DNA of 64,000 nt from Macrostomum lignano (GCA_002269645.1 NIVC01000481.1:186001-250000); one strand, 5' to 3'. Shown: positions 32,601 through 40,088, numbered from the stretch's first letter. Notes: generated by a model from the sequence alone, not told the origin. Made by a program: numbers and translations.

Positions 32601-35600
32601 CGAGCTTGAGAAGATTCGAGCTTGAGAAGAATCGAGCTTGAGAAGACTCGGGCTTGAGAGGTTTCGAGCTTGAGAAGAATCGAGCTTGAGAAGTTTCGAA
32701 CTTGAGAAGTTTCGAGCTTGAGAAGTCTCCAGCTTGAGAATACTCGAGCTTGAGTAGTTTCGAATCCCAGAGTGCCACCCTAATCCCATCGATGCCCCCA
32801 TCCCATCCTCCAGCTGGTCATCAGTGTGCCAATCAGTGTTCTGCCATCCTGCCTGGAGATTGGCGGCAGCACTGAAGAAGAGATCGAGCAGATTCTTGAC
32901 GAAGAGAATGCCGACCAGGTTGGCGGCCTGGGCGAGGTTGAGACGGACCTGAACAAGAAGGGCCAGGTGCTGTGGATCCGCGGTTTAGCTAGGCTGCAGA
33001 CTCAGGTAAGTGGCCATTTTTTTTCTACTTTTAATTGATGCCGTGCAAGCAGGTTTTATTTGGTAATCTATTTTTAACTAGCCTAAATCGATTCAAGACA
33101 GATGAATGAAATCTAGATTTCAATTGAAAATGACAACAAATTTAGGAAAAACTTTAATAAATAAATTTATATGATATTTTGCATGCTCTTGTTTGACTAA
33201 TTTTGTTTTATCAAATCTGTTGTCAGCAGTTAGTTATGTTTTTAGCCATTTTTAGTAGCCTTAAATTAATCGTCATATGATGATAATCATATCTGGAGGG
33301 GGCTGGTACCCCTCCCCCGGTCTCTAAAGTCATTCTGCTATGCTGAGCATTTTTTTTTTAATTTTCTGCCGCTTTCAATGTGCGTTTAGTTTAGTTTAAT
33401 TTGATTTCAACTTTTTTTACTCATACTACTATAAAGCTCTCGTTGTCGTACTATTTAATTAAAGCGCGCATATTTGACTGTTGGCTTGGCTTGCTAGCGA
33501 GTCGCGCGCCGATTTAAACAAACAGAAAAAAAACACCGGAAGGACAAACAAGGTCACGCAACAGTCGCGCGAATACTTTATTAATCCGAAGAATTGTCCA
33601 TGTAAGTGTAATTTAAATATTTGTTTATTTTTTTACATATAGTCACGTAGCTATATGATTTTTACTGTTGTGTATCATTATATCATTAATAGTAGCTTCT
33701 TAAATAACACTGATTAGACATTATTGTTGTCACTTTAATATATTAAAAACTAAATATGAAAATCACAGCTATAACTATATTAGTTAGTTTTGAATTTATT
33801 GGCACTTATCCCTGTACAGGAATTTCTAGTCAAACTTTCACTAATTAAGTTTAGATTACAGCTCTTTAGTGTAAAGTACACAGCTGCCTTCCTACATACA
33901 GTTTTTTCATAAGCTAGAGAGATAATATTAGTAAGGCTTTTAAAAAACATCTTTGTACTAGGTACTAGGCAATGCAACTATTATTATTTATCTCTTGATT
34001 TCTTGTTTATTTATTAATAAACTGTTTCTCTTTGGGGATTGTGTTTAGAGTATAAGCAGAGAACCGGAACTTTAATGGACAAATAGGATAAGGAGGGTGC
34101 GAGTATGCAGAGGACAGAATGAATGTGTACAGAAAGTGGCAAGGTGTAGACGGCAGAATAGGTTGTACAGAATAGAGAAGAGGGCGTACAGATTAGCGAA
34201 GAGGTGTACAGACTAGAGAAGAGGGTGCACAAACAGTAGAGAAGAGGGTGTACAGACTAGAGAAGAGGGTGCACAAACAGTAGAGAAGAGGGTGTACAGA
34301 CTAGAGACGAGGGTGTACATACTAGAGACGAGGGTGTACATACTAGAGACGAGGGTGTACATACTAGAGACGAGGGTGTACAGACTAGAAAAGAGGGTGT
34401 ACAGACTAGCGAAGAGGGTGTACAGACTAGAGAAGAGGGTGTACAGACTAGAGAAGAGGGTGTACAGACTAGAGAAGAGGGTGTACAGACTAGAGAAGAG
34501 GGTGTACAGACTAGAGAAGAGGGTGTACAGACTATTAAAATAAGGATTAAAAAGGTATTGAACAAATTAAAACTAGTTTTTCCTATCATATGTAATCCCC
34601 GATCTCCATTTCTTCTGCCAATCCCAGTCTCTCAGCTTTTCCGCCTTTCACAATTTCCAGCGTCGCATGGTAGACGACATGCGCTCCATTGAGCCTTGGA
34701 TGGCTTCCACTCTGCGTCGAATTGAGGAGCGCAGAATGACCAATTCTAGCATCGGCTCCGGCTCGGCGGGAGCAGCCAATCACGGAGCTGCGACCGCTGC
34801 CGCTGGCTCAGTTGGCATCGACAAGGACGGCAGCTCAGCCGACGGGACTAGCAGAAGGAATAGTGCCGAGCATGTTTAGACTGCTGCTCAGGCTCCAGTT
34901 GCAGGGGGGGGGGGGCTGTGACTTCGGCTTCTGTCCTGCTTTGCCTCCCGCCTGCTCTGGGTTGCTCTGAGACTTCTGGGATGTTGGATTGGCACGTGCT
35001 GCCTCTCCATCACTTCTCTGTCTGTCTGTCTGTCTGTCTGCCTGCCTGTCTGTCTGTCTGCCTGTCTGTCTGTCTGTCTGCCTGTCTGTCTGTCTGTCTG
35101 TCTGCCTGTCTGTCTGTCTGTCTGTCTGTCTGTCTGTCTGCCTGCCCGTCTCTCTCTGTCTGTTTGTCTGTCTGTCTGTCTGTCTGTCTGTCTGTCTGTC
35201 TGTCTGTCTGTCTGTCTGTCTGTCTTAGTGTCTGTCTGTCTGTCTGTCTGTCTGTCTGTCTGTCTGTCTGTCTGTCTGTCTGTCTGTCTGTCTGTCTGTC
35301 TGTCTGTCTGTCTGTCTGTCCGTCCGTCTGTCTGTCTGTCTGTCTGTGTGTCTGTCTGTCCGTCCGTCTGTCTGTCTGTCTGTCTGTCTGTCTGTCTGTC
35401 CGTCCGTCTGTCTGTCTGTCTGTCTGTCTGTCTGTCTGTCCGTCCGTCTGTCTGTCTGTCTGTCTGTCTGTGTGTCTGTCTGTCCGTCTGTGTGTCTGTC
35501 TGTCCGTCTGTCTATCTGTCTGTCTGTCTGTCTATCTGTCTGTCTGTCTGTCTGTCTGTCTGTGTGTCTGTCTGTCCGTCTGTCTGTCTGTCTGTCTGTC

Positions 35601-40088: not shown

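Follow-up and report, generated by a model that had tools for sequence, protein, structure and literature searches.

Vertebrate plasma-membrane Ca2+-ATPases (PMCAs) are spliced at one point of the calmodulin-binding domain, site C, into a- and b-forms. The a-forms arise when an internal exon is included (Strehler and Zacharias 2001, cited in PMC8428515) and shifts the frame into a shared last exon, and the b tails carry a class I PDZ ligand at their C terminus. Autoinhibition and calmodulin kinetics are set by these a and b tails (PMC8428515). Protostome examples include Drosophila PMCA and C. elegans mca-3, both listed as tandem duplicated exon substitution genes. Here we analyze a 64,000-nucleotide stretch of the genome of the flatworm Macrostomum lignano (GCA_002269645.1 NIVC01000481.1:186001-250000), referred to as the window, which contains a PMCA gene on the plus strand; positions are counted from the first letter of the window. 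Behind the site C donor of this gene lie three exons, A, B, and C, each with its own stop codon, and a 9-nt microexon, and we think it likely that the one donor gives several tails by alternative choice among these 3′ exons.

A PMCA gene with a calmodulin-binding domain split at site C

The window gene is the M. lignano gene for a P2B-type PMCA. Translation and inspection of open reading frames (ORFs) place its exons from ~5444 (MANEAS...) to 40088, and the product has the P-type ATPase core, with the DKTGT motif and the cation-ATPase N and C domains. The phosphorylation motif CSDKTGTLT is encoded in exon 24864-25388, and the closest proteins carry PF00690, PF00122, PF00702, PF13246, and PF00689. 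With the full-length product as query, the M. lignano protein P0122 (BOX15_Mlig032505g1) was recovered at 96% identity and two older M. lignano paralogue groups at 77% and 71%; with the C-terminal third as query, relatives were found only at 57-62% identity, and a small number of tail types recur among them after the residues RLQTQ. The annotated protein P0243 maps onto the window exon by exon, including the junctions 32266 to 32814 and 33006 to 39903. The BOX15 gene models derive from RNA sequencing (RNA-seq), assembled with StringTie/TACO and as a de novo transcriptome with ORFs called by TransDecoder, and are not ab initio predictions (PMC5730564). The loci compared with the window were the second copy of the same gene (L003), two copies of paralogue 2 (L001, on NIVC01000980, and L004), and paralogue 3 (L002). 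Splice sites were scored with donor and acceptor weight matrices built from 24 junctions of the three paralogues.

The last constitutive coding exon (32814-33005), whose junctions are fixed by the mapping of P0243, encodes the first half of the calmodulin-binding domain with its tryptophan anchor and ends in phase 0 in the context CTG CAG ACT CAG/gtaagt. The 5′ splice site GTAAGT (33006-33011) is common to all the downstream alternative exons and scores 11.5 bits, high among the donors of this gene family. The product of the exon matches the C28 and C20 peptides of PMCA4 and the structures of PMCA1/2, and the calmodulin-binding peptide structures 2KNE_B and 1CFF_B match the hybrid sequence across the junction. 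An earlier interpretation made from the DNA alone (the sequence-only reading) had placed the split after RLQTQ, in phase 0, at the very point where vertebrate PMCAs are spliced into a- and b-forms. Both statements hold: the CAG/GTAAGT boundary at 33005/33006 and the P0243 junction confirm the split, and alignments to 6A69, 9GSD, and 2KNE confirm its correspondence with the vertebrate point, the intron lying directly after R(I/L)QTQ in the calmodulin-binding domain as at vertebrate site C. The split after RLQTQ is kept in the paralogues, in Capitella, and in Schistosoma. The three downstream phase-0 exons of that reading were likewise found, with their stops, on translation of 34628-34879, 38062-38421, and 39903-40088, and AG precedes each of these starts (34626-34627, 38060-38061, and 39901-39902). 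The calmodulin-binding profile PF12424 was detected above its 22.9-bit cut-off with every tail: 56.5 bits with C, 46.4 with the microexon residues Met-Gln-Thr (MQT) followed by C, 45.7 with B, and 31.1 with A.

Alternative exons downstream of the site C donor

Exon C (coding part 39903-40088, IRVVNAFR...GEVAA and a stop, delimited by the P0243 mapping) is the annotated, "b-like" tail and forms the end of the RNA-seq-derived models P0122, P0242, and P0243. Because the BOX15 models are RNA-seq based (PMC5730564), C is the RNA-supported tail of the window gene. The PF12424 match of the C hybrid covers profile positions 1-42 of 47, and exon C shares ~60% protein identity over 46-48 residues with both paralogues. 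The terminal residues, GEVAA in the window and AEAVA and CPPDV in the paralogues, do not have the E-T-S-L/V form of a class I PDZ ligand; many arthropod C tails end in TETAV.

Exon B (coding part 38062-38421, LRVVRAFK...LNDK and a stop) was taken in the sequence-only reading, together with C, for a duplicated version of the second half of the domain, and the comparison of LRVVRAFK with IRVVNAFR, each matching a known PMCA tail type, agrees with this. Counted from the tryptophan, both exons give Val at position 14 and Phe at position 18, which we take to be the anchor pattern of the PMCA4 C28-calmodulin complex. The start of exon B is identical at 10/10 residues to the tail start of many other PMCAs; it is the most frequent alternative tail of PMCAs in other protostomes. 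Among ~200 retrieved PMCA tails, 81 are of the B type and 80 of the IRVVNAFR (C) type, and their sources are insects, mites, ticks, shrimp, nematodes, molluscs, a nemertean, a brachiopod, and an annelid. No B tail was found in any flatworm protein retrieved, RNA-based models included. A search with a short common anchor joined to tail B gave no homologue, though hit length may have been capped, as all 120 hits listed with the C-terminal third were at most 511 aa long, 1.75 times the query; if so, full-length PMCAs lay beyond its range. Exon B stands behind a CAG acceptor in the window, in paralogue 2 (L001), and in paralogue 3 (L002), and the proportions of replacement and silent sites that differ (pN/pS) in the three pairwise comparisons are 0.25/0.59, 0.295/0.64, and 0.133/0.707.

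Exon A (coding part 34661-34879, RRMVDDM...SAEHV and a stop) has its homologue in the tail of P0244, a paralogue 2 model based on RNA that was found by listing cluster members and reads RLQTQ/RRRADELRSIDPWMVSALRKIEERRMT. The two tails are identical at 18/27 residues when aligned from 34661. The sequence-only reading had preferred a start at 34628, at an upstream in-frame AG that would add 11 residues, with 34661 as the alternative; comparison with the paralogue favors the latter. There the acceptor reads ...tgtacag/CGC with no AG within 60 nt upstream, and P0244 begins its tail at the equivalent CAG/CGC; DNA similarity between the window exon and the paralogue sets in at 34658; and the A hybrid scores 31.1 bits against PF12424 from 34661 and 27.1 bits from 34628. 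Exon A thus most likely starts, on this comparative evidence, at the second in-frame AG, with 34661 as its first base.

Conservation of tail A is limited to its first ~27 residues, and past residue ~30 the two tails are unrelated. The conserved part comprises RRMVDDM followed by PWMxSxLR(R/K)IEERRMT, and over the 27-codon core pN is 0.146 and pS 0.672. With exon A, positions 14 and 18 counted from the tryptophan are both Met and enclose Asp-Asp, and the conserved segment with its own Trp and an RRMT site follows. Exon A resembles a diverged second half of the domain only loosely, through RRMVDDM. The suggestion that the E-H-V end of this tail is a class III PDZ ligand stands as far as the motif goes, as A-E-H-V at the extreme C terminus fits the pattern X-[D/E]-X-hydrophobic; it finds no comparative support, because the paralogue tail ends in LQKKDN. 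A search with the tail A peptide alone against 1.84 billion representative proteins gave no homologue, a weak negative, since clustering at 50% hides isoform tails; the single match, the phage tape-measure-like repeat protein P0121, was rejected as a chance hit. In the L001 copy of paralogue 2, exon A is frameshifted at 37421-37433 relative to the L004 copy, giving two tblastn pieces in different frames and an ORF that stops after 46 codons; the cause is an indel error in the long reads, or else the copy is decaying.

Between exons A and B we identified a 9-nt microexon that the sequence-only reading had missed (36657-36665, ATGCAAACA, flanked by ...cactgcag/ and /gtaagt), which inserts the three residues MQT into the middle of the calmodulin-binding domain. 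Its consensus ATGCAAACR with ...tgcag/ and /gtaagt flanks is found in the window and in L003, L001, L004, and L002, in each of these four upstream of exon B and downstream of the site C donor, and accounts for a short blastn match between otherwise unalignable introns. The pattern AG-ATGCARACN-GT has a single match in the 64-kb window, both strands scanned, and the acceptor scores 9.1 bits, above the 99th percentile of intronic AGs. The spliced product RLQTQ-MQT-(I/V/L)(R/K)VVNAFR is read in P0245/P0247 (paralogue 2), in Hymenolepis microstoma P0005, and in a 4.1-kb cDNA contig (L006, Logan SRR14039982), where the junctions read CAG/ATGCAAACC/ATT. With MQT inserted, the C hybrid scores 46.4 bits against the profile, down from 56.5.

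In paralogue 2, the WormBase-type model P0249 joins RLQTQ to a short exon ~1 kb downstream that reads PLSPAQLAAVRRFSVAGMATLAKLFREA and a stop (L004 25197-25280; L001 31212-31286), possibly a further tail of that paralogue. This possible fourth tail of paralogue 2 (PLSPAQLAAVRRFSVAG...) has no counterpart in the window.

Transcript ends, conservation, and use of the alternative exons

The order A, microexon, B, C is kept in paralogue 2; paralogue 3 has the microexon, B, and C, and no A exon was found in its locus. When the window was aligned by blastn with either paralogue, only the common exon, the starts of A and B, the neighborhood of the microexon, and a stray 28-mer aligned, and this contrast between conserved exons and unalignable introns is a robust one. 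Replacement changes in the alternative exons are far rarer than silent ones between paralogues. Coding-type conservation of the alternative exons is seen among the M. lignano paralogues. Could the open frames be chance ORFs in a GC-rich intron? The region of A is open in several phases and its peptide has the empty library search just described, itself weak for the reason given; set against this, conservation with the paralogues begins exactly at the acceptors, the RNA-based model P0244 has tail A, and B and C match the tail types of ~160 other PMCAs. Acceptor-bounded conservation, the tail A model, and the shared B and C types together refute a chance origin, to which we assign a negligible probability.

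Exons A, B, and C are all in phase 0 and carry their own stop, and in the sequence no cassette that shifts the frame into a shared last exon was found. No donor GT of at least 3 bits occurs in exon A or in the ~140 nt past its stop, and around exon B candidate donors (5.5-7.4 bits) occur at no higher density than past the terminal exon C. An ATTAAA that is a candidate poly(A) signal lies 8 nt past the stop of exon B (38429-38434) and is kept in L003, though not at that distance in the paralogues; a candidate AATAAA lies 21 nt past the stop of exon C (40109-40114), and AATAAA also occurs at +13 past the stop of exon C in L002 and at +116 past that of exon A in the paralogue. By sequence, this pattern of splice sites and poly(A) signals fits alternative last exons. 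In a different arrangement, A and B would be internal cassette exons before C, with the poly(A) site always that of C and the in-frame stop truncating the protein; vertebrate a-forms do arise by inclusion of an internal exon, and exon A of the window gene has no canonical poly(A) signal downstream. We regard this arrangement as very unlikely, given the lack of donors of at least 3 bits in A and the ~140 nt after it, the B-side donors that are no commoner than those after terminal C, and the hexamers at +8 for B and at +116 for paralogue A; moreover, a stop so far upstream of the last junction would normally be expected to mark the mRNA for decay.

Several observations weigh against the use of A, B, and the microexon in the window gene itself. 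Its annotated models (P0122, P0242, and P0243) are all C-tailed, and none has an A, B, or microexon junction. The contig carrying P0244 stops before exons B and C, so that this model could not have chosen either of them. Exon B differs from the L003 copy at 6/360 positions, four of the six being replacements, which equals the intron rate, and its acidic segment no longer follows the LEDLE(D/E) consensus that the paralogues keep, leaving the window exon less consensus-like than theirs. No listed poly(A) hexamer occurs within 950 nt of exon A in the window gene, and the acceptors of A and B are moderate (3.0-5.3 bits). Nei-Gojobori ratios of replacement to silent substitution rates (dN/dS) of ~0.10 for A, 0.07-0.26 for B, and ~0.20 for C, lie in the same range as the 0.16-0.23 of the constitutive exon; they are rough, because protein alignments guided the choice of segments and silent change has reached saturation. 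Much of this would be expected if only C were used in the window gene and A and/or B were decaying leftovers of an ancestral arrangement, still used only in the paralogues. Yet the ORFs of A and B are intact in both gene copies, and their cores show a strong excess of silent over replacement changes relative to the paralogues. Between the window and L003, where introns differ by 1.4-3.4%, exon A shows 0/219 differences and the following 134 nt show none either; at an intron rate of 1.4-1.5%, ~5 differences would be expected over this length (Poisson P ~0.007). GenBank annotation, furthermore, need not list every isoform. On balance we consider exclusive use of C unlikely. From the sequence we infer that A, B, and the microexon are used in the window gene and that A and B each terminate the transcript with a poly(A) site of their own. 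The proposal of the sequence-only reading that one gene yields at least three tails by alternative last exons is upheld in part, with good support from comparison: C is present in RNA-based models, A in that of a paralogue, and B in other phyla, and a weak point is the last-exon status of A, with its missing poly(A) hexamer.

With several tails behind one donor as the preferred reading, the donor at 33006 would join any of the phase-0 acceptors: that of A at 34661, the microexon at 36657-36665, B at 38062, or C at 39903. B and C would be ancient tandem duplicates, each supplying the second half of the calmodulin-binding helix with a different disordered tail, and A would exchange that half for RRMVDDM plus PWMxSxLR(R/K)IEERRMT, a segment that may be a second calmodulin- or kinase-regulated element. 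Inclusion of the microexon would move the V-V-x-A-F block three residues further from the tryptophan. The products would share the catalytic core and the Trp anchor and are predicted to differ, like the vertebrate a- and b-forms, in calmodulin affinity, autoinhibition, phosphorylation sites, and partners; by analogy, the isoforms should differ in basal activity and in their response to calmodulin. We entertain tentatively, at somewhat less than an even chance, the idea that flatworm PMCAs have two ways, not found described in the literature searched, to re-tune the calmodulin switch, the MQT microexon, present from Macrostomum to the tapeworm Hymenolepis, and tail A.

Very large mini- and microsatellite arrays fill several introns of the PMCA gene (5684-6631, 14210-15694, 21117-24747, 27633-28226, and 31477-32195), among them an array of ~3.6 kb in the intron of the "site A" region, between exons ~17032-17200 and 24864-25388. 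Arrays also stand near the alternative exons: 18 copies of a 21-bp unit (34155-34534) end ~125 nt before exon A, (TCTG)x159 (35017-35652) begins 138 nt past its stop, and 17 copies of a 39-bp unit (37326-37980) end 81 nt before exon B. Arrays like these are common across the window, and those around the alternative exons may simply belong to the genomic background. On the minus strand, immediately past the PMCA gene, lies a Ty3/Gypsy-type long terminal repeat (LTR) retrotransposon (41326-46342). Its pol ORF (1195 aa, 41696-45283) has protease, reverse transcriptase, RNase H, and integrase motifs, and its gag ORF (290 aa, 45349-46221) has a CCHC zinc knuckle; flanking repeats at ~41326-41565 and 45995-46342 encode the same peptide, RPELRENQYEGSKAKLVDIYICLSLCTRVHSDRYRFR, and are therefore probably the LTRs. 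Coiled-coil-rich ORFs of a neighboring gene follow on the minus strand (48959-56898), and the gene at the matching position downstream of PMCA in L003 carries Pfam EVC_C. A trinucleotide repeat of ~330 nt (56903-57235) reads as poly-Leu or as poly-Ser, depending on the strand.

Comparison with other PMCA genes

The layout was implicitly presented as new by the sequence-only reading, and in this it was mistaken: an annelid genome has the same layout, isoform sets of arthropods show it too, and, being widespread in invertebrates, it is mostly ordinary. Macrostomum B and C belong to the two protostome tail types LRV(I/V)RAFKST... and IRVVNAFR..., and B precedes C behind the site C donor in the window, L001, L002, and the Capitella teleta locus L007. 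In the wasp Aphidius gifuensis, isoforms X2 (B) and X7 (C) of one gene carry these tails on the same upstream sequence, and both are in RNA-supported isoforms there; the RNA-based models of M. lignano show C, A, and MQT plus C and none has B. The Macrostomum B tail lacks the run LEDLEE-(K/R)RS-HSLHS that is usual after the first ten residues.

The Capitella teleta locus is a close parallel, with one donor and three phase-0 exons behind CAG acceptors, each with its own stop, starting at 18316 (B), 20006 (C), and 22257 (IRVVNAFQE...); B and C share 50% identity over 34 residues. Each of the three Capitella exons duplicates the calmodulin-binding half, whereas Macrostomum A is no obvious duplicate, and the microexon was not found in the Capitella locus. 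Two of the Capitella exons, 20006-20197 (ending ...SEDHV) and 22257-22457 (ending ...GETCV, class I PDZ-type), are unannotated PMCA tail exons downstream of the annotated B-type tail.

Among flatworms, the first exon after the site C donor in Schistosoma bovis (P0149) and Rodentolepis nana (P0029) also encodes a tail unlike the calmodulin-binding domain, and in S. bovis duplicate-type exons (LKVVHAFR and LRAIRAFR) follow further downstream, as in Macrostomum. A resemblance by eye between tail A and these non-duplicate tails (D-x-R-S/T..W/F-M/I..VRR) failed a shuffle test (p 0.03-0.99), and homology was rejected as unsupported; the exon A tail is so far known only in Macrostomum. In S. bovis, an annotated separate gene of 281 aa (L005 83055-83900) starts at a phase-0 acceptor with LKVVHAFR..., and from its sequence this "gene" is almost certainly an unrecognized alternative PMCA tail exon.

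The lineage-specific parts, tail A and the 9-nt microexon, may be new: in the literature searched we found no paper on flatworm PMCA tails or splicing or on a PMCA microexon, which is not proof that there is none. For this M. lignano gene the gain in annotation is two unannotated tails and a microexon, and the microexon and tail A are natural variants that could serve to test how pump activation depends on the register of the second calmodulin anchor and on its identity. More generally, a split domain with its second half swapped by alternative 3′ exons predates the divergence of flatworms, annelids, arthropods, and nematodes, and three old paralogues of an organism used as a regeneration model still have it. 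The current understanding of PMCA is not overturned.

Set beside site C of the vertebrate genes (ATP2B1-4), the Macrostomum locus differs in that its alternative exons each have their own stop, with no credible donor found after A and none above background after B, and in that exon C ends in GEVAA and not, as the b tails of vertebrates do, in a class I PDZ ligand; no 9-nt microexon or A-like tail was present among the vertebrate matches retrieved. The likeness lies in the intron at the same residue and in an alternative exon that is a diverged second half of the domain, seen in 6A69 as MDVVNAFQSG. The effect expected of the exchange, on calmodulin activation and autoinhibition, is also like that at vertebrate site C (PMC8428515).

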